Sequence record: OR513085.1
Strand: one strand, 5' to 3'
Length of the DNA: 64,000 bases
This document shows, one piece after another, positions 29,486-56,265 of this stretch. Below the pieces are notes generated by a model, which saw only the letters and a list, made by a program, of their open reading frames with translations, had not been told where the DNA came from and did no database searches. Positions within the stretch are counted from its first letter, which is position 1, and every line of letters starts with the position of its first letter. The translations under genes were made by a program, and so were the position numbers.

Positions 29486-30622
29486 ATGAAAAACATTTTA
29501 ATTGCTAAACCTAGCAACGACATTTACATTAAAAATCGTGACGACCGTAGCAAAACAGATTTACAGTCATCAGAGATTTTAGCATTCATAAAAGCTATAA
29601 ACTACACAGCATTAGTAACACAGCCAGGCTTTAGATCAGATGCTAAAATTTACTTAGTCAATTCATTTACTACCTGCATGACTAACAATATTGCATTAGC
29701 TACAGATTCGTCATTGAAGTCTAAGCTACACAATGTTAGTCAGCAATCTTGGGAAGGCCAGGCTGCCATTGACGAAGTTAAGTCAAATTTTACAAGCAAG
29801 GATGTTTTCTTTATTTTCTGCGGATTATGGGACCTTGCTAAAATTCAAAACATACAAATAATTGAATTTGCTAAACATTTTCCAGGGAAAGTTTATTATG
29901 TTCAAAATGACTTGCGTTTAGATATGCCGGATGACTTAAAGCCTTACGTTGACAAAATCCTTACACAGGCTACTAAAAACAATGAAGCTAATGGCAGAGA
30001 ATATATGGCGTTAGACTTCTTGCCAGTTTTCTACATTGAGCAACAAATGCAAGTTCCTCACGAATATGATATTGCTGTACCATTTATGAACTGGACTGAC
30101 ATGGGCGAATATAGAAGGCGTAACATACTTTCATTGATTCGTGGCTATGCTAGAGAGGACATAAAACGACTTATTATAGGGCCTAAGGAACAAATTGTTG
30201 AATTGCATATACAAGGTTCGTTTATATTTCAAAAAGGCTGTACATTTTTACCGACAGTAAAACATAATGAACTTGTAAAGACTATGCGAAAGTCTAAAGC
30301 ATCTTACATTATTTCCGAACAGATTTACATCAAAAATGGCCTAACACCTAACAGGGTTATGGAAGCTTTGCTTTCAGGAGTAGTTCCTATAGTAGAATCT
30401 AACACACTAGATTCGTTCAATCCTGACATTATTTCAATGTTTGGAGGTTATTTTTACTATGACCATACTTGTCTAAGTGGTAGCATAGACTTCAATGAAG
30501 TAATTGATGGGCGATCATTATACGAGCAACAGCAACTTACTGCAAGACTGCATACTGATTGCGAAGTTCGTTGGAAAGTGCTTAAATACATAACTGATAA
30601 CTTTGCAAAATTTGTAATATAA
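29486..30622 (+). CDS. DNA beta-glucosyltransferase-like glycosyltransferase (GT-B), paralogue 1
   Basis: VYYVQNDLRL (T4 BGT YYLFTDIRL, catalytic Asp), KILTQA (KVISQG), NRVMEALLSG (LRVWETMASD). Confidence 0.7.
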   Translation: MKNILIAKPSNDIYIKNRDDRSKTDLQSSEILAFIKAINYTALVTQPGFRSDAKIYLVNSFTTCMTNNIALATDSSLKSKLHNVSQQSWEGQAAIDEVKSNFTSKDVFFIFCGLWDLAKIQNIQIIEFAKHFPGKVYYVQNDLRLDMPDDLKPYVDKILTQATKNNEANGREYMALDFLPVFYIEQQMQVPHEYDIAVPFMNWTDMGEYRRRNILSLIRGYAREDIKRLIIGPKEQIVELHIQGSFIFQKGCTFLPTVKHNELVKTMRKSKASYIISEQIYIKNGLTPNRVMEALLSGVVPIVESNTLDSFNPDIISMFGGYFYYDHTCLSGSIDFNEVIDGRSLYEQQQLTARLHTDCEVRWKVLKYITDNFAKFVI

Positions 30623-31544: not shown

Positions 31545-31586
31545 TATAATACACACATGCAATTCAATAATACACAAGACAAAATC

Positions 31587-32888
31587 ATGGCAAAGCAAAA
31601 AAACAAAATTTTCATACTTAAAATAGGTTCGTTTATGAGGCCGGAGGGCGATACATCGTCGATAGGTCTGATAACCAAGGAACCTAGTAACTTCGCAAAG
31701 GTTTTAGTTGACACTGTAGGCGATGACTTTGAAATTGTACTAGGCTCAGACAAACATATTGTTGATGTTGACAATAGCCTAACATACATAAACATTGAAC
31801 GTGACGGTAGGTTTTTTGCCAATGACATGAAGCCAGGTGATATCCTGCTAATTTGGCAAGGAGTTTACTTGGACCAAGAACATCATCCGCATATTACTGC
31901 ACACTACGAGTTTATCAACGAACTACAAAAACGTTCAGATGCAGGAACTATCAAGCAATACTTTATGATGACCGACACTAGAGTTCCTTTGCTTAATATA
32001 GTTGACTATGTTAAGTCTAAATTTACTCCTGGCGAATTTGCTTCAAAGTATATGGATGAACATGCTATTGACTTTTTATGCGATACGTCTAGGTTTGACA
32101 TTGATACTGAACAAATTGTTATGCTTACTCAAGCTTACAAAACTGCATTTTTACAAAAGGACTTGGCTGACGGTTTAGTTGAATGTAATAGCTACTACCA
32201 AGGTTTTGAATACAAAAAATACAAAACAATTTGTCACTTACCTATGCATTGCATGCCGCTTATAACGCATACTGTAGATAATTCATTTCCGTACTTCAAT
32301 TCTACAAACATGCCTAAGCATGACATGGTATTCACAGTACAATCGCTAGGATATTTCAACGACTACAGAATGGAACGTTTCCTTGAACTTGTAGCACATC
32401 CTAGCATTTCAACAAATTTTGATGTTGCAGTTTATGGAAAACATAACCGCAAGGCATACAACAAATTGTTTGACTATGTAGAAGCTAATGATACTACTGG
32501 CCATGGAGTTGTTAGTTTACCAAAAATGCTAGGCCCAGTTAAGTTTGACTATATGAAGTACATTCTTAACCAGGCGCAATATAATATGTGCATTTCAGAA
32601 GGTCCTTACGTTAAGTACGATTTATTGCCAAACAGGATTTTTGAATCATTCGCATCCGGTACTTTACCTTTGGTCGATATAGACATTGTACAAACTACTT
32701 CACAAGTTTCATTCAGATGGCTAATGTCAGCAAACAATAAATTCCTAGTCGGTAATACTGATGATGTTGTAGAAGCTTTACGTGGTCATAGCCAAGGCGA
32801 AGTTAACGGGTTTAAAAACGATATCCAAGCATTTATGCAATCTGCACTTACAAACTTTTACGCAGAAATTAAAGACTATTTTTCATAG
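31587..32888 (+). CDS. DNA beta-glucosyltransferase-like glycosyltransferase (GT-B), paralogue 2
   Basis: QYFMMTDTRVP, VMLTQA, NDYRMER, NRIFESFASGTLPLVD; start 31587 or 31557. Confidence 0.75.
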   Translation: MAKQKNKIFILKIGSFMRPEGDTSSIGLITKEPSNFAKVLVDTVGDDFEIVLGSDKHIVDVDNSLTYINIERDGRFFANDMKPGDILLIWQGVYLDQEHHPHITAHYEFINELQKRSDAGTIKQYFMMTDTRVPLLNIVDYVKSKFTPGEFASKYMDEHAIDFLCDTSRFDIDTEQIVMLTQAYKTAFLQKDLADGLVECNSYYQGFEYKKYKTICHLPMHCMPLITHTVDNSFPYFNSTNMPKHDMVFTVQSLGYFNDYRMERFLELVAHPSISTNFDVAVYGKHNRKAYNKLFDYVEANDTTGHGVVSLPKMLGPVKFDYMKYILNQAQYNMCISEGPYVKYDLLPNRIFESFASGTLPLVDIDIVQTTSQVSFRWLMSANNKFLVGNTDDVVEALRGHSQGEVNGFKNDIQAFMQSALTNFYAEIKDYFS

Positions 32889-33416: not shown

Positions 33417-34124
33417 ATGTCAAAATTACAACAATTGTCCAAATTAAGCACGGACATTAAATTACTGCAAACGCTATGGACTGTTATAACGCAGGCCGAC
33501 GTAGATGCTAATGTAGCCAAGTATTCGGCAGATTTGTCAAGAGCTATTGTAGAAAGCTACGGTTATTCGACGATTAACAACTGGGACAAAATTACAGTTT
33601 ATCAAGGTACACGCATTATTTTTGAATACCAGATTAAGCTTGAACAGTCTATGGCACCAATGCTTAGTCATTCTCAGGAAACTGTACGTGCTTATGTAAT
33701 GTTTCTAAACAAACAATTGCAACAACTAACTAACGCTACACCAGAAGAGCTAGAGGAAGTAAAAGCTACACTTAACGTAACGTTAGAGCCTAGTGTTGCA
33801 TTGGATAACGCCAACAAATTGGTTGATTTGGCAGCTTTGCAACAACAAAAAGCAGACTTCCTTGATAACCTACAGCCTGGCCAAGAAGTACTTATAGTAG
33901 CCGAAGGCGGCTTAACTTACGTAAAAGTAGGTTCGGTAGTAGGCAATCGTAGGTTCAAGGCAGAAATTACTGATAGCAATGAAACTTATGAAGCCGTAGT
34001 AAATCCTGATGTCGTTATGGCTATACAGTCAAACCATCCAAGTGCATCAAAGTTACAAGGCTTAACTAAAACATACATTATGTTTGACCCAGAACACTGG
34101 TCAATTCGCAATAGAATTTTATAA
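33417..34124 (+). CDS. hypothetical protein
   Basis: likely start ATG 33417; coiled coil then SH3/KOW-like tail. Confidence 0.65.
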   Translation: MSKLQQLSKLSTDIKLLQTLWTVITQADVDANVAKYSADLSRAIVESYGYSTINNWDKITVYQGTRIIFEYQIKLEQSMAPMLSHSQETVRAYVMFLNKQLQQLTNATPEELEEVKATLNVTLEPSVALDNANKLVDLAALQQQKADFLDNLQPGQEVLIVAEGGLTYVKVGSVVGNRRFKAEITDSNETYEAVVNPDVVMAIQSNHPSASKLQGLTKTYIMFDPEHWSIRNRIL

Positions 34125-34145
34125 CCACAAAATAAAACAAACAAA

Positions 34146-34580
34146 ATGCCAACAGATTATTCACAGCCAGCTTCAACGCTTTGGCTAATGCAAGATCACA
34201 TTGACAGAACTGAAAATGAATTTGTCGAACGCAAGGAGTTTATGCGTCTAATAAACCAAATTAACTGCAGAAATATTTCCGAATCTACAATAGACGGATA
34301 TCGTAGAGCATTAACAATTATTGGAGTTTTGTCTGAACCAACCTCACCAGGAGTCTACAAAATTTTGATTAAAAATGCTTATCGTTTTTCATCATCCGAT
34401 CTACAAACATATGCTTCGGATGTTTTGCATAAACGCAATACTGAAATTTGGCCAGTGCATATGAAACGTTTCAATCCAATTAAGTTTGTCAAAGGTAACG
34501 ACTGTACTATGCTAAGGCTTGACCCTAAGTCGCACATGACTTCCAAACAAAAGGAATTGTTCAACAAAGACTTTAAGTAA
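34146..34580 (+). CDS. hypothetical protein, possible DNA-binding
   Basis: ORF with A-rich leader. Confidence 0.65.
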   Translation: MPTDYSQPASTLWLMQDHIDRTENEFVERKEFMRLINQINCRNISESTIDGYRRALTIIGVLSEPTSPGVYKILIKNAYRFSSSDLQTYASDVLHKRNTEIWPVHMKRFNPIKFVKGNDCTMLRLDPKSHMTSKQKELFNKDFK

Positions 34581-37422: not shown

Positions 37423-40400
37423 ATGAGTATCAAAATTTATCACTCAGCAGATGTCCAAGTGAACTGTGCTGGGAAACACTCGAATCGGTACAACGAACAT
37501 GTTTACATGCTAACCCAACAATCTAGCACAGTTATTAACGAAGGTTATGACTTGGCAGTTTTTGTTGGCGACATGTTTGAAAGGGCAAATACTACCGACA
37601 CCGAGAAATCACTTTTAGTCAACCATCTAATAAAGCCAATTTTGGATGCAGGCATTCCAATTTTCTGGACTGATGGTAACCATGACTTAAAACAATCAAA
37701 ATTTTCGTTTGACCCAGGTGATGGTTCAAAGAAAGATGAGGTTGGCGTACTTAGAGCGTTGACCGACTTTATTGATTCTCCGCTACTTACATATGGCGAG
37801 GAAACTGGCTTCTACAACATGGGAGAGTTTAAAGGTCAAAATGTCATTATTGCTTGTTGGTCGCATAAAGCTAAATATTCAACCGAAGCCAAATTCAAAT
37901 CGCCTTGGCTAGAATTGGATGCTAAACCTGCAGAAAAGCAAGAATCTATCCGAGCAGCCTTGGCTAATTCAATTGTTTTTGATACTTACCACGACCCGGT
38001 ACGTAACGTTAAGAACTTTGATGGCAAAGTTGTACGAGGAGATAACGAAGCACGAACTGATATTTCCGAGTTCCTTGGAGACTTCTGTTTGATGGGGGAT
38101 ATTCATATGCCAAGCATTATGAGAACTCCAAACAGAGCTGCAGACTTCTTTGCGTCTTACCCATCATCACCAATGATTTTATATTTCGGTGAAGGCGACT
38201 ACTACACAAACTTTACGTTAGTCGATGAACGTAACCCACATCACGGATTCAATCATGTGGTAGTGCATTCCAAAACTTCAAAGGAAGTTACGTTTGTACC
38301 TTACAATCAACATACAACTAGGCATACTATAACAATTACTGAGGACTTTGATGTCGATGCAATTCCTGATTTTGAATTAAAGAATGCTTCTGCTATCAAC
38401 AACATGGTACGTTTAGTAATGACTACGTTTGAAGGAATTGAACAAGTCGACAAACTAATCAAACACTTACAAAACAAATACACAGTAAGTATTGATATTC
38501 AGACAAAAGTCAATCAAACGCTTACTCAAAACAGTCTAGATGAAAGCTTCAATATTTCCGACCTTTCAGACAAGGACTACTTAATGAAAATTGCAACTCA
38601 GTGTATTACTGACAAAGTCAATGCTACAAGGGATTCCGATGAATACAAGCTACGACTAATCGAGGACACTGTGAAAGTTTTTGAATCTGCGCTTGACAAT
38701 ACACAATACGTAGTACCTCTAAGCAAATACAAATTCCAAACGTTAGACTTGCATAATTTCATGCCAATCAATGAACTTAAATTGGATTTTGACCAAATTC
38801 GTAACTTAGGTTCAATTGTGAAAATCAACGGTAACAATGGTACTGGAAAAACTACAATTTACAAAGGGTTACTTTGGATTGCTACTGGCAAAATTGACTG
38901 GAGACAATCTGAAAATAAAAGCAAACGAAATGCTCTGGACTATTTCAATGACAAAGCATGGGACAAAGATACTACTGCAGGACGTTTAGTTGTTACGCTT
39001 AACGACGAACGTATTGAAGTTTCAAGGTCAATCACTAGACTTTGGGCAGCTAAGACATCTGACACTCATAAAAAATCTGTTAACTGGAAGCACCATGTTT
39101 GGAGAGTTGATGAAAACCTGGAAGTTAAAGTTAATGGTGAAGTACTTGCAGAAAAGGATGCTGACGAAAAGTTACTAGAAGTTTTTGGTGACTTCTACAA
39201 ATTCCAAAGCATGCACGTAGTTAACCAGGCACACTTAGATCACTTGTTGCTAAACTTACCACTCGACAAGTTAATCGACTATATTCTAAAAAGCATTGGA
39301 TTTACTGTAGCCGAGCAACTTAAAGCTAACTTAGAGCCTGAACGTTCTAGGCTATTTAAGGACTTAGTTAAGCATGGTAAGGATATTGCAGGAATCAACA
39401 TTGACATTGGAATTAAGGAAACTGAAATAGTACAGACTGAGGAAAACATTGCTGATGTAGAAAAGCAAATTGACCAGGCTACTGACGAAATTTCAAAAGT
39501 CGGAACTATGCTTAACCAACTTAATGCTAAGCTGCATGTAGTTTCTGACGAAGATAAAGCTAACGTTAGCAAAAAGGAACAAATAGTTGAGCAAATGTCA
39601 GGCTTACAGCTGGCAATCAAGGAGACTCAATACAAAATTGACAATCCTGTTTGGTCAGAGGAAAAGCAACAAGGCTTAGCTGCTTTGAAAGCTGAGCAAG
39701 TTAAGCTTAATGGAGACTTACTTACAGGAACTTCCAGAATTTCAGAGTTGCAATCTACTAACGTTATACTTAACAACACAGTATTTACTGCATCTGGCGA
39801 AATTACGAATATCAATGTAGCACATGCTAATGAAAAGGCTCAGGCTAAGTCAGACTTACAAAAAGCTAAGGCCGATAATTTAGCGACGATTGCAAATTCT
39901 ATAAATCAAATTTTAGATGCAGTTAATGCAGAAGCTAAAGAGCGTAATGCCGAAGTTGGTGAAAAGCTTGATGAACTTAACGAAGCTATACGTGCAACCA
40001 AGGAAAGCAAATCACAATATGAATCTGCTGTAGCTAAGTTAGAAGGGCAAATTGAATCTGAACAAAAACAAATTGACAAACTAAATTCTGGTCAATGTCA
40101 AATTTGTGATAAGTCATATGCCGAACTGCCTACAGTTAAAGCAGAGATAGCTAAGCACCAGGCTACTATTGATACTGCAAATGCTAACATTACTACAATT
40201 AAAGGGCATATTGAAAAGTTTGAAGCTACTATAGCAGCTAACGAACAATCTATAGTTACTACAGAAGCTTTACGTAAAGAAGTAGTTACGCAACTTACGC
40301 AACTTACGCAAGAGCAATTAACTGCTAACATTACTCAGCTTACAGAAATTAAACGTTTGACTGACGAAAATAAGGATGAGTACATACAAACAAAATCCGA

Positions 40401-41403
40401 TGCTATTGATAAACTTGAACTTTCAGAAGGCCAGTTAGCCAGAGTTAACGAATTGAAGCTAACAATTGCAGATGCTGAAGCTAAAGTCAAAGCTAACAAT
40501 GATGCTGTCGAAACGTTACGACTTTCTATAGCAGAGCTTCCTAAAAAGCTAGAAAACGTTCAGCTTGAAATTGCTAATGACGAAGCATTCCGTGAAGCCA
40601 ATACATCAGAAGCACTTTACAAATTGCTGCTAACTCAAAAAGGTTCAGTAGAATCTGGCGAAAAGTTGTTAGAACGAATTGTAGTTGCTGAGAAAAACCT
40701 ACAAGACAATGAGGTAGTAGAGGCTGAAATTAAGCTACAGGAATCGAAGACTGACGAATACAAGAAGGCTTTAAATTTGGCAAATAGCGAAGCGGCTAAA
40801 CTACGTATACGTTTAACTACGTTGAAAACTCAGAAAGCCGGGCTTGAGTCAGTTATTGACGAAATCAAGGACTATGAGCATGCTAACAATATTTGGTCAA
40901 TGTTTATTCACACAATCGGAATCAAAGGATTGAACAAATACGTCTTCGATACTATTGCATTGCAAATTAATGCTGAGTTAAATTCGTTACTTGATGGTCT
41001 TAACTACAGGATTTTCTTTGACTTAGGTGATGGCTATGCATTGAAAATGGTTGACTTACTTGGTAACGCATCTATACGTAACCTATACACAATAGGCGGT
41101 ATGGAATCGACGCTAGGCTCATTGGCATTGCTAACAGTCATAAAGTCCAAGACAATCAAAAATAACGGAGACTTTATGTTCCTTGATGAAATTACCGGAA
41201 AGCTTAACAATTCCAAGGACACTAAAGGAACTGATGCTACAAACAAAGACTACCACTTTGAGTTCTACACAATTTTGAAAAAGCTATCGCAGAATATCAA
41301 CATTTGCATAGTTGACCATGCATTACCAATTGAATGGTTTGCCTCAGTTATCGACATTGTTAAGTACGACAACGGAGTATCTGACATTGTACAGTCAGTT
41401 TAA
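37423..41403 (+). CDS. fused Mre11/SbcD (gp47-like) nuclease and Rad50/SbcC (gp46-like) ATPase
   Basis: phosphoesterase motifs SADVQ, GDMFE, GNHD, GDIH; Walker A GNNGTGKT; long coiled coil with CQIC zinc hook; signature-like IGGME; Walker B FLDE. Confidence 0.9.
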   Translation: MSIKIYHSADVQVNCAGKHSNRYNEHVYMLTQQSSTVINEGYDLAVFVGDMFERANTTDTEKSLLVNHLIKPILDAGIPIFWTDGNHDLKQSKFSFDPGDGSKKDEVGVLRALTDFIDSPLLTYGEETGFYNMGEFKGQNVIIACWSHKAKYSTEAKFKSPWLELDAKPAEKQESIRAALANSIVFDTYHDPVRNVKNFDGKVVRGDNEARTDISEFLGDFCLMGDIHMPSIMRTPNRAADFFASYPSSPMILYFGEGDYYTNFTLVDERNPHHGFNHVVVHSKTSKEVTFVPYNQHTTRHTITITEDFDVDAIPDFELKNASAINNMVRLVMTTFEGIEQVDKLIKHLQNKYTVSIDIQTKVNQTLTQNSLDESFNISDLSDKDYLMKIATQCITDKVNATRDSDEYKLRLIEDTVKVFESALDNTQYVVPLSKYKFQTLDLHNFMPINELKLDFDQIRNLGSIVKINGNNGTGKTTIYKGLLWIATGKIDWRQSENKSKRNALDYFNDKAWDKDTTAGRLVVTLNDERIEVSRSITRLWAAKTSDTHKKSVNWKHHVWRVDENLEVKVNGEVLAEKDADEKLLEVFGDFYKFQSMHVVNQAHLDHLLLNLPLDKLIDYILKSIGFTVAEQLKANLEPERSRLFKDLVKHGKDIAGINIDIGIKETEIVQTEENIADVEKQIDQATDEISKVGTMLNQLNAKLHVVSDEDKANVSKKEQIVEQMSGLQLAIKETQYKIDNPVWSEEKQQGLAALKAEQVKLNGDLLTGTSRISELQSTNVILNNTVFTASGEITNINVAHANEKAQAKSDLQKAKADNLATIANSINQILDAVNAEAKERNAEVGEKLDELNEAIRATKESKSQYESAVAKLEGQIESEQKQIDKLNSGQCQICDKSYAELPTVKAEIAKHQATIDTANANITTIKGHIEKFEATIAANEQSIVTTEALRKEVVTQLTQLTQEQLTANITQLTEIKRLTDENKDEYIQTKSDAIDKLELSEGQLARVNELKLTIADAEAKVKANNDAVETLRLSIAELPKKLENVQLEIANDEAFREANTSEALYKLLLTQKGSVESGEKLLERIVVAEKNLQDNEVVEAEIKLQESKTDEYKKALNLANSEAAKLRIRLTTLKTQKAGLESVIDEIKDYEHANNIWSMFIHTIGIKGLNKYVFDTIALQINAELNSLLDGLNYRIFFDLGDGYALKMVDLLGNASIRNLYTIGGMESTLGSLALLTVIKSKTIKNNGDFMFLDEITGKLNNSKDTKGTDATNKDYHFEFYTILKKLSQNINICIVDHALPIEWFASVIDIVKYDNGVSDIVQSV

Positions 41404-41424: not shown

Positions 41425-41461
41425 AAAATGGCCAAAACTTTTAAAAAGTTTTGGCCATTTT
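41425..41461. repeat. 37-bp inverted repeat abutting an early promoter
   Basis: AAAATGGCCAAAACTTTT-A-AAAAGTTTTGGCCATTTT. Confidence 0.9.
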
Positions 41462-41494
41462 GTTTTCATATGTCGAAAAAAATGATTAAATTTA
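41460..41494 (+). promoter_or_regulatory. phage early-type promoter
   Basis: ATGTC-N12-TAAATTTA. Confidence 0.7.
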
Positions 41495-41518
41495 CATATA
41501 ATTAAAAAATCAAAAACA

Positions 41519-43125: not shown

Positions 43126-43168
43126 TATGCTTTAGCTTGCGCAATTTGCTAACAAATTGTGTACATAT
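43126..43168 (+). promoter_or_regulatory. conserved hairpin element copy 4
   Basis: TATGCTTTAGCTTGCGCAATTTG-CTAA-CAAATTGTGTACA. Confidence 0.55.
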
Positions 43169-43205
43169 AACCACAAACAAAAACAACTTACAATTTTTAA
43201 CCGAC

Positions 43206-44243
43206 ATGACAAAGACAAAATTAATAACATTCTTGTATACTTTTGCCAATGAGGCGCATATTTCAGGTAAACATATTCTTATAGCTAACCTAGCATACTT
43301 AAAAACTTTGCAAAACAAATATGACTGCGAAGTCTATGTTTACAAAAAGTCTAAAATTCGCACATTCAATGATGGAATGCTTGATGCTATGGGATTCAAA
43401 ACTGCCAATGACAAGGACCTTGCTGAAATAGAATTTGACCACTTCGCTTATGCTGGTACAGGCTCGCAAAAATTTGTTCTGCCTGCACATTTACGAAGAA
43501 ACTTTTATCCAAGCATTGAAGGCGAGGCTTACGAATCACTTGAACATATGCAGGATAATTCGTCAAAAGTTTACTACACTGCGGCATTTAACTACCTCAA
43601 AGACAAGAAAAACGTATACAACTATGTTATTGACCCGCTATACGATAACATTTACCTTGACATGAATTACTTTTACTTCTGCAACTATCCTGATGTTGAC
43701 GGCGAAAAGCTTAATGAATGTCATGCTGAACGTTTAGCATATTACAATGTCTATGTCGAGCTAATTAAACAATTCTACCCAGAGCTTTTTTACGTTAAAG
43801 ACGCTGAGCGTATCAACGATGTTTACGCTAACTTTGCTAACGTTAAACGCTTCAACAACAAACGTTCAGACTACTTATTAGATGCTATTGACAAAGGCTT
43901 AGGGATTAACAACCACAATTCTAAGTTTATTGACTCTATAAGCTACATGACTAATCTTTGTAAGCATAGATTTACGTTAGCTACGTATAGCTACGACCCT
44001 AGAACGTTTTCGCTACTTAGATGCTTAGATGCTTTAGCGTTAGGCTTAGTTCCAATGGTTGCTGTAGAATATAGCGATTTAGTAAATTTCATGGGTGCAG
44101 AGTTTGCAGACTATCTAAAAAGTCAAGGACTTATAACTGCAGAACCTGACTTTGATTTTGCTAAGCTACAAGCCTGGGATGATTCAAAATTTGCAGAAGT
44201 TCGACAACAACTTAAAAACTTACTAAACATTAACAACATATAA
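43206..44243 (+). CDS. third GT-B-like glycosyltransferase (RB69-type arabinosyltransferase-like, tentative)
   Basis: VYNYVIDP and FTLATYSYDPRTFSLLRCLDALALGLVPMV parallel GT-B motifs; likely start ATG 43206. Confidence 0.55.
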   Translation: MTKTKLITFLYTFANEAHISGKHILIANLAYLKTLQNKYDCEVYVYKKSKIRTFNDGMLDAMGFKTANDKDLAEIEFDHFAYAGTGSQKFVLPAHLRRNFYPSIEGEAYESLEHMQDNSSKVYYTAAFNYLKDKKNVYNYVIDPLYDNIYLDMNYFYFCNYPDVDGEKLNECHAERLAYYNVYVELIKQFYPELFYVKDAERINDVYANFANVKRFNNKRSDYLLDAIDKGLGINNHNSKFIDSISYMTNLCKHRFTLATYSYDPRTFSLLRCLDALALGLVPMVAVEYSDLVNFMGAEFADYLKSQGLITAEPDFDFAKLQAWDDSKFAEVRQQLKNLLNINNI

Positions 44244-44256
44244 CAAAATTTAAACA

Positions 44257-45237
44257 ATGTCAATTTTCCAGCCTAGAAAACACTATAAACCATTTGAATA
44301 TCCGCAAGTACTACAATTCACAGAAGCCATGCAAAAAGGCTTCTGGGTACATTCTGAAGTAGATTTTACTGCGGATGTTCAAGACTTCCATTCACAACTT
44401 GAACCATTTGAACAAAATGCAGTTAAGAATGCTTTACTTGCAATCGCACAAATCGAAGTTTCAGTTAAAACATTTTGGGGTAACCTTTACAACTTATTTC
44501 CTAAGCCTGAACTTAACGGTTTAGGCGCTACTTTTGCCGAATGTGAATTTCGTCATTCGGAAGCATACTCTAGGCTACTTGAAGTTCTTGGCTTCAACGA
44601 CGAATTTGAAAAAGTTCTTCAAGTACCTGCAATTGCTAAACGTATTGCACAGCTTAACTTGGCTAGAACTGACTATCCTAACTTAACAGAGGAACAGGCA
44701 AAAACAGTTAACTTACTTATGTTTGCTGTGCTTGTTGAGAATGTTTCGTTATTTTCACAATTCGCTACGGTACTATATAAGTCCCGATTCTACGGTGTCA
44801 TGAAAAATGTCGCAAATATAATAAATTGGACCTCAATTGATGAGGGATTGCATGGACAGGCCGGGCTAATGCTAATCAATATAATAAAGGAAGAGCACCC
44901 GGAAATTTTTACTGATGACCTTAAAGCCGAGATCGTTAACAAAATTCGCGAGTCTATCGACATAGAAGCCGAAATTAATGCTTGGATTTTTGAGCAGGGC
45001 GACTTTGAAAAATGTACACAGGCCGACTTGTTAGCTTACATGAAGCAAAGAGTTAACGATAGTATGGAAGTTATTGGCTTTGACAAACCATTCTCAGCAG
45101 ATGAAATAGTTTTGGCTAAAAATTTAAAATTCTTTGAGGAGGAGGTGTATGCTAATTCTTTGGATGACTTTTTTGCCCGCAGACCGGTTGACTATTCTAA
45201 GCATGACAAATCAATTACTGCCAATGACTTATTCTAA
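44257..45237 (+). CDS. nrdB: ribonucleotide reductase class I beta subunit (Flavobacterium-type, class Id-like)
   Basis: AQIEVSVKTFW, ECEFRHSEAY, VENVSLFSQF, IDEGLH, DFFARRPVDY. Confidence 0.95.
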   Translation: MSIFQPRKHYKPFEYPQVLQFTEAMQKGFWVHSEVDFTADVQDFHSQLEPFEQNAVKNALLAIAQIEVSVKTFWGNLYNLFPKPELNGLGATFAECEFRHSEAYSRLLEVLGFNDEFEKVLQVPAIAKRIAQLNLARTDYPNLTEEQAKTVNLLMFAVLVENVSLFSQFATVLYKSRFYGVMKNVANIINWTSIDEGLHGQAGLMLINIIKEEHPEIFTDDLKAEIVNKIRESIDIEAEINAWIFEQGDFEKCTQADLLAYMKQRVNDSMEVIGFDKPFSADEIVLAKNLKFFEEEVYANSLDDFFARRPVDYSKHDKSITANDLF

Positions 45238-46325
45238 CATAGGCATACAAATAAACTTATCCGAGTTGCACAAAAACCCGGATAAGTTTTTTGACATTAT
45301 AGATCATAATTGCTATACAATTTACAAAGTTACCAATTTAGTTAACAACAAGTCGTATATAGGCGATACTAAAATAAGTTTACGTGTACGAATATTTGAT
45401 CACATACATGGCAGTTTTGCTAAAGTTCCATTGCATTTATATAATGCAATTAATAAGCATGGCCTTGAAAATTTTGCAGTAGAGGTAGTGTCATATAACG
45501 AACATGATACCGAAAAATTCTACATTGACAAATATGACACATGGTATAATGGATATAATGCAACAAAAGATGGTAAATTTTATCAACGGCATGCATATGA
45601 CAAAACTATATCAGTTTTTAGCAAACAATTAGATATTTATCGTCGAATTAAACCTTTTGAACTTGACACGTATTTGTCTAATGGATGGGTAAAACGAAAC
45701 GTTCATTCAGATTATAAGTGCATATACAATGAAAGTTTAGACATTTATACAAAGGTGCATAAAAATGAACTTGACACGTATTTGTCTAATGGATGGATAT
45801 TGCAAGGTTTAAATACTGGCACAGTATATATGACTACTAATGATGGCAAGCGTACTAAAATAAAGCCTGAATTAGTACAAGACAAATTATTACAAGGGTA
45901 TACTATTGGCTGGGGACCTAATGACCCAGACAGCCGTAAATACATACCGGTGCATAACGCTGAACATACAGTAAAAGTTTCAAAAAAACGAACTGCAGAA
46001 ATTTTTAGACAATGGTTTTATGCGAGGACTGCATCCAAATGACAGAAAAACTAAAGACAGAGGGCTATATACGTATGTGCATAATTATGTTTCGCAAAAG
46101 CGTATATTACGATCTGAACTTGACACGTATTTGTCTAATGGATATGTTAGTGCTAAGTTAGCTCAATCTAAAATTAAAGTTAGAGTAATTAATTGCATAA
46201 ACAAATGCAAAGAACTTAACTTAGAAATTAACGAAGAAAATTTTAACAGTGTACGTAATCAAGGCGATATACGTTTCATAGAGTATACTAAAACAAAAGA
46301 GGCATTCCCCTCATTTTTCAACTAA
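45224..46325 (+). mobile_element. free-standing GIY-YIG homing endonuclease split by a +1 frameshift at A7 (45982-45988)
   Basis: TIYKVTN..YIG motif; ELDTYLSNG repeats continue in the +1 frame ORF 46020-46325. Confidence 0.8.
45658..46143 (+). repeat. three exact 29-bp direct repeats TGAACTTGACACGTATTTGTCTAATGGAT
   Basis: at 45658, 45766 and 46115; encode ELDTYLSNG. Confidence 0.9.
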
Positions 46326-46345: not shown

Positions 46346-46639
46346 ATGACAATTATCAATCAGGTAGCAACTTACCTAAGCACAGAAAAGTATCAAAAAG
46401 AGTACAAAGCACAATACGAAGACCGTGTTGTAAGAATGCATGACGAATTTATGGAAGTGTTCAGACGATATTCTGGTCTTGGCGCATTCATAAACAACAC
46501 TGAAGCTTTTGCTAAAGTTGACGAAGGTCACCGAAACTTAATGCCTAAGCAATACAAAGCAATGGGCGATTACTTAAAGGCTTTGGGTGCCAGAATTATC
46601 TTGGATGCTAAAAACTTTCCTAACGTAACTGAGGACTAG
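46346..46639 (+). CDS. hypothetical protein
   Basis: ORF with A/C-rich leader. Confidence 0.65.
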   Translation: MTIINQVATYLSTEKYQKEYKAQYEDRVVRMHDEFMEVFRRYSGLGAFINNTEAFAKVDEGHRNLMPKQYKAMGDYLKALGARIILDAKNFPNVTED

Positions 46640-47200: not shown

Positions 47201-48424
47201 ATGTACAAATTCATATACGTCTGGTATAACAAAGCCAGATTTTTTGACAAAACTAAAGACTTACCTTGGATTTATATCGGCATGCACAGAGGGCATATTG
47301 ACGATGGTTATATATCGTCTTCAATTTACTTAAATACTGAAATGCAACAAGATACTGGCAATAATTGGCAGCGTATAATTATTAAGCGTTACGAAGATTC
47401 CGTAAGCGTAGAAGAAGTTTATGCACATGAATGCGCATTGATACGTGCAGCATTTAAACGATATGGCTTTAGCAAAGTACTTAATAGAACTGCAACATTT
47501 AATAAGCCAACATCAAAGGGAAAAGTAAGACTTATAGTACCTGATTCTAATGGTGCTATGATTTGGGTGCCTAAGGCAAATAAAGAAGCATACTTGGAAC
47601 TTGGATATGCTACATTAGCAGGTAAATATAAAACTATTGGTAAGCTTAAAATAACTAACGGCGAAGAAAATAAATTAGTAACAAAAGAAGCTTTTGCTGA
47701 AATGGACCAAAGCATTTGGCGCATTGGTCAGACTAACCGAGTTGAATTTGGAAAAGCTATAAACAAAGATGGTCAAGTAAGATATGCAAAAAGTCATGAA
47801 CTAGATTCATTTTTAGCAGAAGGCTGGACATTAGGAATAGGTAAACGACCAAAATCTCCTAAAGCTGGCGACTCTATGCGCGGTAAAGTTGCTATAAATA
47901 AAGATGGACGTAATAAGTATGTAATGCCTGAAGAACTTGACACTTTTTTAGCAGATGGTTATATTAGAGGTACTGTAAAATGCCCTACTGAAAATCTAAT
48001 TTGCGTGAACAAAGATGGTAAAAACAAATTTATAATGCATGAAGAGGTCGATGCGTTTTTAGCAGATGGCTGGACATTAGGTAACACTAAACGAGGTAAG
48101 CGTAGACTTATGAATAATGGCGAGCATGCTAAACATGTACCAAATGAAGAGGTCGATGCGTTTTTAGCAGATGGTTGGGTATACGGCAAAATAATAAATG
48201 CTGATGCAGAACGCAAAGTATGCATCAACAAAGACGGCAGTACTAAATTCGTATCGCCATCCGTAATTGAAGCATTCTTAGCAGATGGTTGGAAGTATGG
48301 CAGCCCTAACAAAGGCTCACGAAAACTTATGACTAAAGATGGTGAGCGTAACAGGTATATAAATGAATCTGACATAGAAGCATTCTTAGCAGATGGCTGG
48401 ACATTAGGCAATAAAAAAGTATAA
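47201..48424 (+). mobile_element. free-standing Seg-like GIY-YIG endonuclease with about 6 C-terminal repeats
   Basis: FIYVW...IYIGMH.G..DDGY.SSS; repeated NKDG..K.V...E.DAFLADGW..G. Confidence 0.8.
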
Positions 48425-50547: not shown

Positions 50548-50754
50548 ATGAAAACATTTAGCCAGTTTATCACCGACTGCATGGTCAGTTTCGGCAACTT
50601 CGTTCTGTCAAAAGAACGTGAGGATAATGTTTCCGAAGAAGTCAAACGATCAGTTACGGATGCTGACTTGGCTAATTGGAAAGAAAAGAACAACATAACG
50701 GACAATAACAACTCAATAGAAAATCACGAACCTGGGAATGGCATCAAACTTTAA
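50548..50754 (+). CDS. small hypothetical protein
   Basis: operonic ORF. Confidence 0.55.
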   Translation: MKTFSQFITDCMVSFGNFVLSKEREDNVSEEVKRSVTDADLANWKEKNNITDNNNSIENHEPGNGIKL

Positions 50755-52108
50755 TAACGATCAAAACGGAAATGGAGGGCTTGGCTCTGATGGAATGTAT
50801 CACGATGGACATATGTATGTTTCCGATGAAATGCTAAATTGCGGACCTGTAGGAGGCCAGCTACAAGGCGGTCAATGGAGACACTTCAAAACATTTGACC
50901 CTAACTCAAACGGTTCATTGCCTTGCGGTAACTGTGGCAATTCACACTGTCATCATTGTCATACTTACTTACAAAATGGTAAATGGTCAAATGACTATCA
51001 TGGCTACAATCATCATGGATATTCGCCTGACCAAACTACAAGGTACATGATGAAATATCATGGAGGAAATTATGCACAGCTTAAAAATCTAAACAAAATT
51101 GTCAAAGATCGTAAAGCGACAAAAGTTATTTACATGGATTTTGATGGCATATTCTCCGGAACTATGGCATACAATAAGGACGAGAAATTCATGAAGACTG
51201 CGCAATTTTCTGCACGTTATGCTATTGAAATGCTTAGATTCTACGGATTTGAAGTTAACATTATAACAGGCGACCAATCTGGTTCAGGGTTTGACATTAC
51301 TAACAAAATTTTGGAAAGAATTCCGGTTAATTCTGTACAATACGTATCTGGTCATGACAAATTCATGCATATGTCTGCCAACCACGACATAACTAAAATA
51401 TTCTATGTCGGCGATGATCTTTTCGACTTAGGAATGGCTGCTGGTCGTAGAACTCCTATTCTTATGACTACAGCAAATGCTATGTGGGCTTTGAAAAATA
51501 TGGCACATTACACGGCACTTTCAGGTTCGCATGATTATTCAGTGTTTGACATTGCGTCGGCTATACTTATGTCTTTTGAAATTGACCCTATTGCATATGC
51601 TGCCAAGACTAGAAGAAACAAAATTGCTACAGACCTTGCGGCTAACATAAACTTTAGAATCGGAAATAACATAGCATTCACTGAAAATTCGCAAAACTGG
51701 ACTGCTAATTACTTACCAATTTTAGTTTCTGACTATGGAGTTAATCCTGATCACATAGGACTTACTACTCCTTATGTTAAGCCAGACAACATGAAGTCTG
51801 TAGATGACATTTATATTGCTACTAACTTAGATTATTTTGTAGACAACTATGCATCATTAAGGCATAACAGGACTTATTTCTTACTACCTAGAGAAATTGG
51901 CCTAGGTGATGTTAAGTTTATTGAAACATTAATGGCACTGGACAAACTACTAGCATCGCCACTAATTGAATGGACTATATTAACTGACCACCTTTCTGAA
52001 AATTCCAAGCCTATGCTTTATGCAATTTGTATGGAGAAAAAGCTATACAATGTACTTTCTGCGACAGGCTTTACTGACCCGCAGATATCACCTACTAGCG
52101 GAGGCTAA
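50738..52108 (+). CDS. KdsC/YrbI-type HAD sugar-phosphate phosphatase with His/Cys/Gly-rich N-terminus and extra C-terminal domain
   Basis: DFDGIFS (motif I), IITG, HDK, YVGDDLFD; N-terminal CGNCGNSHCHHCH. Confidence 0.75.
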   Translation: MASNFNNDQNGNGGLGSDGMYHDGHMYVSDEMLNCGPVGGQLQGGQWRHFKTFDPNSNGSLPCGNCGNSHCHHCHTYLQNGKWSNDYHGYNHHGYSPDQTTRYMMKYHGGNYAQLKNLNKIVKDRKATKVIYMDFDGIFSGTMAYNKDEKFMKTAQFSARYAIEMLRFYGFEVNIITGDQSGSGFDITNKILERIPVNSVQYVSGHDKFMHMSANHDITKIFYVGDDLFDLGMAAGRRTPILMTTANAMWALKNMAHYTALSGSHDYSVFDIASAILMSFEIDPIAYAAKTRRNKIATDLAANINFRIGNNIAFTENSQNWTANYLPILVSDYGVNPDHIGLTTPYVKPDNMKSVDDIYIATNLDYFVDNYASLRHNRTYFLLPREIGLGDVKFIETLMALDKLLASPLIEWTILTDHLSENSKPMLYAICMEKKLYNVLSATGFTDPQISPTSGG

Positions 52109-54328: not shown

Positions 54329-54934
54329 ATGCTAGTACTTTTTGAAGGTCCGGATGGTTCCGGTAAATCCACACTAATTGCCAAAATAAAGCAAAAGTTT
54401 CTGCCGGAAGCTTTAGTATGTAAGCGTAATTCGTTCAAAACATACAATCCGGAGGAATCAAAATACCCAACTAATATCGACTTAACGTTATCCGCACCAT
54501 GGGACTGGAGATTTTTCTTGGAAATGCATGAAGCTAATTTCAAGTCACATAATTTCCTTTGCGACAGATCATTCATTACACAAAGAGTTTACCAGGATGC
54601 TTTAGGCCCTGAAACTAAAACTCCTGAATTGGATGCTACTTTGTTAGCTTACGAACATGAAGTTTCGCAAATTCCTCACCTAGTAGTTTATTGTAAGCGT
54701 AAAACTCTACGTAACGATGGCGACTTTGCTGCAATGGATAACAAAGAACTTGATATTGTTGCAAGGTACGAGGAATACATTGACAATGAATGTACTTTGA
54801 ACAAAATTGTCATTGACACTGAAAAACTTGACATCGACTCTTGTACTGCTTTGATAGTCGGTGCTATCCAGGCAGCTTACAATCACTATGTAGAAAACAA
54901 ATCTGGTAAAGCTATTAACATATGGGCAGATTAA
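54329..54934 (+). CDS. deoxynucleoside monophosphate (thymidylate kinase-like) kinase
   Basis: FEGPDGSGKST P-loop, CDRSFIT..VY; likely start ATG 54329. Confidence 0.85.
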   Translation: MLVLFEGPDGSGKSTLIAKIKQKFLPEALVCKRNSFKTYNPEESKYPTNIDLTLSAPWDWRFFLEMHEANFKSHNFLCDRSFITQRVYQDALGPETKTPELDATLLAYEHEVSQIPHLVVYCKRKTLRNDGDFAAMDNKELDIVARYEEYIDNECTLNKIVIDTEKLDIDSCTALIVGAIQAAYNHYVENKSGKAINIWAD

Positions 54935-56265
54935 ACAAACAGCCTGGGGGTCTTCTTGACTCCCAGTTTTCCGCAATACTTTCACAAAAAACTAACAGAA
55001 CAATAATCGAAGCCAATTCGGTTCATGATGCTTACGTTCTAGGACTTCATGCATTAGCTAACGGTAGCCAGGATATCGAAGTTAAGGAAGGAGTCAAAAC
55101 AAAAAACTTACACAATGCAATAATTGAACTTACTCCTCAGTATTCCGAGGAAAATCCAATGGGCTACTTTAGTAAGCGAGTTTTTTGTAAAAAGCGTAAC
55201 CTGACTAACAAAATTCAAAATGCTGAGTTTGCTTGGTATATGACGCTAAACTCCGAAGTTGACGCTATCACACCTTACATCAAAAATTGGAATAAGTTTT
55301 CTGATGACGGCATTCATGTTAATTCAAACTACGGAGCTATCTGGGCTGAGCAAATGCCAGGAGTCATACAAAAGCTGGTTTTTGATAAGTATACTAGGCA
55401 GGCTTCGTTAGCAATTTATTCAAGAGACATGGCTAACATGCATGACTCCAAGGATATAAATTGTACATTGTCAGTAGACTTCAAAATTTTACCAAGAGCT
55501 ATTGGCGGAGGTGATGAACTTCATATGACTGTAATGATGAGGTCTAACGATATTGTTCACGGTCTACCAATTGACATGTTCTGTTTCGGTACGCTTTTGG
55601 AATTGTTACGTAACGAACTAGCTACGTACTACGAAAACTTATACTTAGGAACTTACACGCATATTGCAACATCATTGCATATCTACGAAAATGCTTACGA
55701 TAAGTTAGAAGGCATTGAACTTATGGAGCCTGAACGTATTCAAAAGAAAAACGAAATCACAGCAATTCCGCCGGCAGTAACTTACATGAACTTCTGGGTA
55801 CATCAACCTGCATATATCATGGGCATCCTGGATAAAAAACATTTTGCCAAGTTCACCAAGAACTATGATATGTTCTTTTCGTTCAATTTCATTAACTCGT
55901 TAGTTGAGGAGCTTTATATCGACAAGCATAAAAACTACACTAACTTGATTAAAATTGAGGACTTAATGCCAGTATTCGATGAAGTTGTAGCATACTGTGA
56001 TGAGTATGACATTACATTACCTGCACAAGAATATGCTAAGGACAAAGTAAAAATGTTTGATTTACTTTATGACTGTGCTAAAATAGCAGGAACACAAATG
56101 ATGTCTACTGCATTTTTGTCAACAGTTATACTGGCTAGGGATGCTGCACATTTTAAACAATCATTCACGCATATAAGCGGTTTTGCATCTAGCAAATTCC
56201 CGATAACTAGATATTGTGCATACCAGGCAGTACTTAATTATGTTCTAAACGCACCGAAAGACTAG
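54922..56265 (+). CDS. dCMP hydroxymethylase/hydroxylase-like enzyme (T4 gp42-like, thymidylate-synthase fold) with C-terminal extension
   Basis: AEFAWY, VNSNYG, DINCT (catalytic Cys), MRSNDIVHGLPID (Asp at the dCMP-specificity position), SLHIY. Confidence 0.85.
   Translation: MGRLNKQPGGLLDSQFSAILSQKTNRTIIEANSVHDAYVLGLHALANGSQDIEVKEGVKTKNLHNAIIELTPQYSEENPMGYFSKRVFCKKRNLTNKIQNAEFAWYMTLNSEVDAITPYIKNWNKFSDDGIHVNSNYGAIWAEQMPGVIQKLVFDKYTRQASLAIYSRDMANMHDSKDINCTLSVDFKILPRAIGGGDELHMTVMMRSNDIVHGLPIDMFCFGTLLELLRNELATYYENLYLGTYTHIATSLHIYENAYDKLEGIELMEPERIQKKNEITAIPPAVTYMNFWVHQPAYIMGILDKKHFAKFTKNYDMFFSFNFINSLVEELYIDKHKNYTNLIKIEDLMPVFDEVVAYCDEYDITLPAQEYAKDKVKMFDLLYDCAKIAGTQMMSTAFLSTVILARDAAHFKQSFTHISGFASSKFPITRYCAYQAVLNYVLNAPKD

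Follow-up and report, generated by a model that had tools for sequence, protein, structure and literature searches.

Two groups of phage DNA sugar transferases offer the closest described comparisons for the gene studied here. The first is represented by the T4 DNA beta-glucosyltransferase (BGT; PF09198, CAZy family GT63) and by the T4 DNA alpha-glucosyltransferase (AGT; GT72). As a positive-control set, 42 relatives of T4 BGT were collected, 36 of which were aligned. Across these 36 sequences, D100, R191, Y261, R269 and E272 are invariant and E22, R195 and K237 near-invariant, and the invariant columns coincide with known functional residues (Arg269 and Glu272 in UDP binding, Asp100 as catalytic base).

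The second group comprises gp3 (ORF003c) and gp46:47 of RB69 as well as gp76/77/79 of DLP3, which are DNA arabinosyltransferases acting on 5-hydroxycytosine (PMC6024577, PMC13326640). The RB69 modification was revised to arabosylated 5-hydroxycytosine in a 2026 NAR paper, in Table 1 of which gp3 is given as 'beta-arabinosyltransferase 2' with GT4-like structural matches (PMC13326640). The same paper describes D169N as the signature of 5-hydroxy-dCMP synthases and reports that phages with poly-glycosylated cytosine possess two or three transferases each (PMC13326640).

The stretch of 64,000 nucleotides analysed here (the window) covers bases 62001-126000 of the 218.5-kb genome of Chryseobacterium phage MA9V-2 (OR513085.1), which infects C. 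indologenes MA9; over the 5 kb surrounding the gene of interest, it is 100% identical to this record. The published description of this phage makes no mention of glycosyltransferases or DNA modification genes. A preliminary description of the window had proposed that the gene upstream of nrdB, MA9V2_132, is a third GT-B-like gene besides two BGT-like ORFs, and that it resembles RB69-type arabinosyltransferases.

Results

A constrained gene with three known family members

43206..44243, + strand: MA9V2_132 CDS, 345 aa; orphan family with three known members; annotated as 'hypothetical protein' in the record

The ORF extends from an ATG at 43206 to a stop at 44243. While a longer, TTG-initiated frame from 43137 is also present, the ATG at 43206 was taken as the start, since the orthologues share the same Met and the DNA immediately 5' of the ATG is conserved. 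Comparison with the orthologue in phage MA9V-1 (92% aa identity) resulted in a dN/dS of 0.074 at a dS of 0.80, which identifies MA9V2_132 as a protein-coding gene under strong purifying selection. Together with a 42%-identical homologue that occupies the corresponding place on a further phage contig, this confirms that the ORF represents a real gene.

Relatives are exceedingly few. Word-index searches of 5.8 billion proteins, run with the single protein as well as with a profile, and HMMER searches of 1.84 billion representatives revealed only two: the MA9V-1 orthologue (P0002) and a protein of 345 aa, 42% identical to MA9V2_132, that is encoded on a 9-kb Logan contig (P0005 on contig L002). 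A third HMMER match (P0006), a protein of 2764 aa with T/D/G-rich repeats, was taken as spurious. A tblastn search of 50,697 phage records detected relatives in MA9V-1 and MA9V-2 alone, and scans of IMG/VR, JGI metagenome and GTDB genome contigs yielded no genuine further relative; a match in a Lachnospiraceae MAG (48 pattern-driven residues within a 254-aa membrane protein) was rejected as chance. A degenerate DNA pattern of the conserved motif did not match any viral or metagenome contig. Furthermore, neither MA9V2_132 nor its MA9V-1 orthologue nor P0005 had a relevant match in Pfam, PHROGs or NCBIfam, with the Pfam scan of MA9V2_132 being empty at E values up to 10. PDB sequence and profile searches returned PDE5 matches only, which we ascribe to chance, and the family profile matched nothing in the genome except MA9V2_132 itself.

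Conservation is distributed unevenly along the protein, with three regions standing out:

43206..43610, + strand: N-terminal part, residues 1-135, Rossmann-like beta-alpha-beta (AF2 pLDDT 55-73, strands and helices alternating)
43815..43877, + strand: block N.VYANF.NVKRFN.KR.D.L, residues 204-224, with invariant columns and two arginines, R215 and R220
43986..44060, + strand: C-terminal segment, residues 261-285, with Y263, R272 and D275 opposite Y261, R269 and E272 of T4 BGT

The last of these is the segment quoted in the preliminary description, which was indeed found at these residues. It corresponds to the best-conserved 25-aa window of the protein (80% identity to P0005, residues 255-280), while the window of residues 201-225 around the arginine-containing block reaches 64%. 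Overall, identity to P0005 is 57% in the C-terminal part (residues 201-310) and 34% in the N-terminal part (residues 1-135), in which the blocks F-L..F-A.....G-K-H (residues 9-23) and Y-A-G-T-G (residues 82-86) are invariant within the family. A better-conserved C-terminal half is the usual pattern of donor versus acceptor domains in GT-B enzymes, including BGT.

Comparison with the RB69 arabinosyltransferases

RB69 ORF003c (366 aa) contains the GT4-type motif 'TVENSSIEAISKGVPVI' (T-V-E-N-S-S-I-E-A-I-S-K-G-V-P-V-I) and, further downstream, an unrelated 'FEYDPDT'. The motif SYD...FS..RF.EA....P, which had been named as that of RB69-type putative arabinosyltransferases, is absent from ORF003c as well as from ORF046c and ORF047c, the two pieces into which the gp46:47 transferase is split in the RB69 record and which were compared separately. 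BLASTP of MA9V2_132 against the three ORFs gave E values of 0.47-2.3; the value of 0.47, obtained for ORF003c, stems from a 12-residue 'YDP' match (F-E-Y-D-P-D-T with Y-S-Y-D-P) outside the GT motif, and BLASTP as a test for membership yielded no match to ORF047c or ORF046c at E up to 10. The profile comparison with ORF003c, which the preliminary description had suggested as a check, did not detect homology either (hhalign probability 1% and P 0.057 over a non-equivalent 16-residue stretch, P 0.13 in the reverse direction), and P values of 0.27 and 0.71 were obtained for ORF047c and ORF046c, respectively. Moreover, the motifs themselves differ: RB69 gp3 has the GT4 arrangement E-x7-E (T-V-E-N-S-S-I-E-A-x-x-x-G-V-P), whereas the helix of MA9V2_132 opens with an arginine (R272-C-L-D275-A-L-A-L-G-L-V-P). 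With that motif missing from all three RB69 proteins and neither sequence nor profile similarity to gp3 or gp46:47, membership of MA9V2_132 in the RB69 families is not supported.

Comparison with BGT-type enzymes

Two other genes in the window are clearly related to T4 BGT:

29486..30622, + strand: BGT-like glycosyltransferase 1 (P0003), hhalign 91.6% probability, E 8e-7 against the T4 BGT family
31557..32888, + strand: BGT-like glycosyltransferase 2 (P0004), hhalign 85.9% probability, E 5e-6, 257 columns

In a joint alignment, both keep equivalents of E22, D100, R191, Y261, R269 and E272. The BGT family HMM matches BGT-like gene 1 only, in both phage genomes (MA9V-2 and MA9V-1), while PF13524 matches BGT-like gene 2 only (genome-level E 0.008), which is also matched by phrog_32512 (E 1e-14); PF24785 and PF03016 do not match anywhere in MA9V-2 or MA9V-1. 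Single-protein scans of viral contigs, intended for building families of the two BGT-like proteins, gave no matches. MA9V2_132 is matched by none of PF13524, PF24785, PF03016 (all three searched at per-genome E values up to 10), phrog_32512 and the T4-BGT family HMM. Compared to the family scores of 86-92% for the two paralogues, the three-member alignment of MA9V2_132 reached a probability of 0.4% (P 0.16) in hhalign against the 36 BGT sequences, and no alignment was produced in global mode.

The conserved C-terminal segment, nevertheless, constitutes the top local alignment of MA9V2_132 with each of BGT-like 1, BGT-like 2, T4 BGT, the BGT family and T4 AGT. In the comparisons with BGT, Y263, R272 and D275 fall on Y261, R269 and E272, in alignments that span only 20-36 columns with P values of 0.007-0.16 and in which the invariant Glu of BGT is replaced by Asp. 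The stretch R-C-L-D-A-L-A-L-G-L-V-P-M-V of MA9V2_132 is aligned with R-V-M-E-A-L-L-S-G-V-V-P-I-V of BGT-like 1 and with R-I-F-E-S-F-A-S-G-T-L-P-L-V of BGT-like 2, so that the continuation G-x-x-P-x-V is common to all three. With T4 BGT, MA9V2_132 shares its length (345 aa compared to 351) and the pattern Y..(5-6)..L-R-x-x-[ED] (residues 263-275 compared to 261-272), whereas equivalents of D100, E22, R191 and R195 are not alignable.

Addition of the two paralogues to the BGT set resulted in the strongest sequence statistic, a P value of 0.0071 for the three-member alignment in hhalign (P 0.01 over 43 columns for P0005 alone). This value was reached neither by any of 60 column shuffles (minimum 0.0085) nor by the reversed alignment (0.42) nor by the best of 57 other MA9V-2 proteins (0.033), and hmmsearch --max gave per-sequence E values of 0.003-0.005. 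As a single sequence, MA9V2_132 obtained a P value of 0.13 and ranked about tenth among 57 phage proteins. The relaxed pattern R-x-x-[DE]-[AS]-x-x-x-G-x-x-P-x-[VI], which was composed after the sequence had been seen, occurs in 3 of 131 ORFs (34,187 residues), namely BGT-like 1, BGT-like 2 and MA9V2_132, each time at 77-81% of ORF length, with 0.005 matches expected from shuffles. The parallel that had been drawn to the GT-B helix of the two BGT-like ORFs finds soft support in the common motif; the result for MA9V2_132 alone and the pattern having been written after the fact count against it.

Outside the motif, the extended hhalign alignments of MA9V2_132 with BGT carry no confidence. D143 (following N-V-Y-N-Y-V-I) and R215/R220 were picked by eye, without statistical support, as candidate counterparts of Asp100 and Arg191/Arg195; the R215/R220 block may represent a phosphate-binding loop comparable to R191/R195 of BGT, a comparison likewise made by eye only. 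It should be noted that RB69 gp3, an accepted GT-B enzyme, itself reached a P value of only 0.2 against the BGT profile in the same set-up. The negative profile results are, therefore, weak evidence against a GT-B fold of MA9V2_132.

For T4 AGT, a positional likeness was observed, as a-gt comes after genes 46/47 in T4 and MA9V2_132 is located 1.8 kb downstream of the following gene:

37423-41403: fused gp47/gp46 homologue

The proteins, in contrast, could be aligned by hhalign over 13 matching columns only (P 0.4), on E-L-G-A-C-G-T-I-P.

Structure prediction

AF2 models based on the three-sequence alignment were of low confidence, both with MA9V2_132 (pLDDT 48.7, pTM 0.47) and with P0005 (pLDDT 40.1, pTM 0.31) as target. 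Residues 1-135 were the sole stretch of the first model to form a plausible beta-alpha-beta sheet, and PDB-wide and BFVD fold searches with both models, unusable at this confidence, returned noise. The ESM Atlas model of the exact MA9V2_132 sequence has a pTM of 0.66, and all 10 sets of its structure neighbours are GT-B or GT-B-like (TM 0.49-0.59 over 244-282 residues), comprising GT47, RXYLT1_C, Glyco_trans_1_2, GT10, GT1/GT4 and pyruvyl transferase families. The named feature neighbours are likewise all GT-B families, mostly viral, and include the PF09198 T4-Gluco-transf cluster (0.94, with 183 of 256 features in common). The nearest clusters by features and structure, many of them viral, are Glyco_trans_1_2 (PF13524), RXYLT1_C (PF24785) and Exostosin GT47 (PF03016); these families have an R/K-x-x-E-A...G..P helix, a motif of a similar type to that of MA9V2_132, although none of the three HMMs matches the protein.

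A GT-B fold of MA9V2_132 is plausible, with most of the weight carried by the ESM Atlas neighbours, which constitute a single source that provides neither an alignment nor an E value. The designation as a third GT-B-like gene is in line with these neighbours, with the motif common to the BGT-like genes and with the P value of 0.007, while no significant match to a GT-B family profile was obtained in Pfam, PHROGs, NCBIfam or the PDB, the very result that the preliminary description had named as refuting it.

Gene order and upstream region

44257..45237, + strand: nrdB (ribonucleotide reductase beta), starting 13 nt past the MA9V2_132 stop
50738..52108, + strand: MA9V2_142, annotated in the record as KdsC-type sugar-phosphate phosphatase, within the conserved MA9V2_132-nrdB-nrdA block
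43138-43163, + strand: hairpin with 11-bp stem and 4-nt loop, without T-run, in the 85-nt spacer 5' of MA9V2_132

MA9V2_132 lies directly 5' of nrdB, as had been described, and this adjacency is kept in MA9V-1; it recurs in contig L002, where a 64-aa ORF separates the two genes. Contig L002 encodes, in this order, P0005, the 64-aa ORF, nrdB (68% identical), small ORFs, an intein-containing nrdA (60%), a further small ORF and, at the contig end, a homologue of the KdsC-annotated protein (31%), which in MA9V-2 has no Pfam match. Hence, the block of MA9V2_132, nrdB, nrdA and phosphatase is conserved in a clearly diverged phage, with MA9V2_132 and the phosphatase diverging faster than the nrd genes. 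Generally, the neighbours of MA9V2_132 are replication and nucleotide genes rather than structural or lysis genes. The link to nucleotide metabolism that had been drawn from nrdB amounts to a conserved gene order rather than a demonstrated functional link; related phages keep gene order anyway, so that the adjacency is hardly informative about function.

The 111-nt stretch upstream of MA9V2_132 folds with z = -2.5, and the hairpin, previously considered the gene's own regulatory element, does exist as a structure. However, it lacks a T-tract, occurs only once in the window and sits in a 20-nt stretch that is missing from the intergenic spacer of MA9V-1. Therefore, we assign no regulatory weight to it. 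A conserved upstream 12-mer, TATAACCACAAA, was considered as a possible promoter and dismissed, since its two occurrences in the window are compatible with chance.

Genes for the modified base and the sugar donor

54922..56265, + strand: second thymidylate-synthase homologue with 'MRSND', T4 gp42 type (dCMP hydroxymethylase signature)

Like T4, MA9V-2 encodes a dCMP hydroxymethylase-type enzyme. The 5-hydroxy-dCMP synthase of RB69, gp48, has 'MRSQN', which is lacking in the MA9V-2 homologue; in contrast to RB69, the latter keeps the Asp at E. coli ThyA position 169 and is thus without D169N. From M-R-S-N-D, the modified base of MA9V-2 is predicted to be hydroxymethylcytosine.

Two further genes are located outside the window. 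MA9V2_233 encodes a SIS isomerase that is 31% identical to the A5P isomerase ORF055c of RB69 (E 1e-22), and MA9V2_235 encodes a fusion of a nucleotidyltransferase (E 7e-11 to ORF053c) and an APH-like kinase (E 8e-25 to ORF052c), the architecture of RB69 ORF53_52c. Judged by their sequences, these genes are the ones that characterize the UDP-arabinose route of RB69, and the presence of such RB69-like genes for donor synthesis makes an arabinose donor plausible in MA9V-2. The resemblance to RB69 concerns the system, in which multiple transferases of GT-B type would be combined with phage-encoded synthesis of an arabinose donor. A third transferase in MA9V-2 would, furthermore, fit the two or three found per phage with poly-glycosylated cytosine.

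Discussion

The gene, its conservation, the motif and the genomic surroundings are direct observations. MA9V2_132 is best regarded as a phage gene under constraint, of early or middle type, and we infer fold, donor, acceptor and activity of its product as follows. The protein would be a very divergent, two-domain glycosyltransferase of the GT-B fold, whose better-conserved C-terminal half (residues about 200-310) may bind the nucleotide sugar. The contacts would be made by the arginine-rich loop with R215 and R220 and by the helix R272-x-x-D275-A-x-x-x-G-x-x-P, with R272-x-x-D275 as the putative counterpart of R269/E272 in T4 BGT. The less conserved, Rossmann-like N-terminal half would bind the acceptor. 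The most likely role of such an enzyme would be that of a third DNA sugar transferase, which either extends glycosylated hydroxymethylcytosine DNA by another sugar or modifies different sites of it. This role is suggested by the other genes of the phage, namely a dCMP hydroxymethylase of the T4 type, the two BGT-like transferases and a pathway for an arabinose donor like that of RB69. We consider this reading, i.e., a very divergent GT-B glycosyltransferase and candidate third DNA sugar transferase, to have slightly less than an even chance of being correct.

What competes with it most directly is that MA9V2_132 is not a glycosyltransferase at all, but an orphan alpha/beta protein that serves another purpose early or midway in infection, for example by assisting ribonucleotide reductase or nucleotide metabolism or by contributing to host takeover, and that the motif match arose by chance. 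This is doubtful, yet deserves serious attention: no family was matched significantly, only three members were found among 1.84 billion representatives, AF2 did not produce a GT-B model, the strongest sequence statistic is only a P of about 0.007, and in three phages the gene keeps its place beside nrdB. However, the feature and structure neighbours in the ESM Atlas are uniformly GT-B, and the alignment with the donor-binding helix of BGT-type enzymes involves precisely the most conserved segment of MA9V2_132, which occupies an equivalent place along the protein. If, on the other hand, the GT-B fold is correct, the protein might still act on an acceptor other than DNA (a protein of phage or host, a glycan of the cell envelope or a small molecule) or be a catalytically dead, glycosyltransferase-like binding protein. 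The Atlas neighbours belong mostly to families that do not act on DNA (GT47, RXYLT1, GT10 and Glyco_trans_1_2), the catalytic Asp100 of BGT has no alignable equivalent, and DNA glycosylation may need no more than the two BGT-like genes; the location amid replication and nucleotide genes and the precedent of up to three transferases in phages with poly-glycosylated cytosine (PMC13326640) argue against it. We regard a non-DNA role as rather improbable. By far the least credible reading is that of an RB69 arabinosyltransferase family member (ORF003c/gp3 or gp46:47 type), for which context alone speaks, as the homologues of ORF055c and ORF053c+052c make an arabinose-type donor likely; the sequence comparisons (BLASTP E 0.47, hhalign P 0.06-0.71) and the difference between E-x7-E and R-x-x-D speak against it.

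In a more specific version of the favored glycosyltransferase reading, MA9V2_132 would be the founding member of a new GT-B family, orphan by sequence. Its enzyme would attach a second or third sugar, either arabinose or a different one, to hydroxymethylcytosine that is already glycosylated, in a jumbo phage of Bacteroidota. Although we consider this unlikely as it stands, it would make MA9V2_132 part of an arabinosyl-hydroxymethylcytosine type of hypermodification, which is so far undemonstrated in any virus. Should the protein turn out not to be a transferase, the gene would count as ordinary among orphan phage genes, and the chief lesson would be that the analogy to RB69 was wrong. If it is active, in contrast, MA9V2_132 would be the third transferase in a predicted hypermodification system in which hydroxymethylcytosine of the T4 type is combined with an arabinose donor of the RB69 type, and it would define a glycosyltransferase family that is invisible to current profile libraries. 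This would help to explain the number of sugars that such phages attach and would provide a handle for annotating orphan genes in the jumbo phages of Bacteroidota.

Putative transcription signals and mobile elements around MA9V2_132

The start of the transcription unit that holds MA9V2_132, the candidate third DNA glycosyltransferase gene, and nrdB is probably marked by a terminator-like hairpin, directly after the gene for a 1326-aa fused gp47/gp46 protein (Mre11-Rad50-like), and by a promoter-like site beyond it.

41425-41461, strong terminator-like hairpin (17 bp), then a T-rich tail
41473-41502, promoter-like site after this hairpin
34120-34131 and 43166-43177, exact 12-mer TATAACCACAAA, upstream of the gene starts at 34146 and 43206, respectively
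45224-46042 and 47201-48424, GIY-YIG homing-endonuclease-like genes between nrdB and nrdA
46346-46639, small ORF matching Pfam PF21825 (crAss001_48-related protein; E 2.5e-14)

The 12-mer copy at 43166 is kept in the related phage MA9V-1. Chance could account for its occurring twice. Mobile elements have a hotspot in the nrd region: in a contig from a related phage, nrdA (L002:4722-7562) has an intein with a LAGLIDADG domain in place of the GIY-YIG genes.

Links to other phage families

The PF21825 match ties MA9V-2, a Chryseobacterium jumbo phage, to the crAss-like phages of Bacteroidota. Furthermore, phrog_32512, a PHROG family listed under "unknown function", is matched by each of the two BGT-like proteins (29486-30622, E 1e-3; 31557-32888, E 1e-14), so that the label of BGT-like DNA glycosyltransferases can probably be given to this family.

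Arabinose donor and predicted modified base

Counterparts of the RB69 UDP-arabinose donor genes (ORF055c and ORF053c+052c) were identified by homology outside the window.

184718-187693 of OR513085.1 (L011:6719-9694), MA9V2_233 and MA9V2_235

MA9V2_233 is a SIS/KpsF-GutQ isomerase homologous to ORF055c, and MA9V2_235, annotated as "GlmU", is a nucleotidyltransferase fused to an APH-like kinase, homologous to ORF053c+052c. The thymidylate-synthase homologue (54922-56265) contains M-R-S-N-D, as does T4 gp42, whereas M-R-S-Q-N is found in RB69 gp48. If the D169N rule is applied, which separates makers of 5-hydroxy-dCMP from those of 5-hydroxymethyl-dCMP (PMC13326640), the MA9V-2 product should therefore be 5-hydroxymethyl-dCMP, not 5-hydroxy-dCMP. 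The predicted 5-hydroxymethyl-dCMP and an arabinose donor in one phage would represent a combination without previous description.
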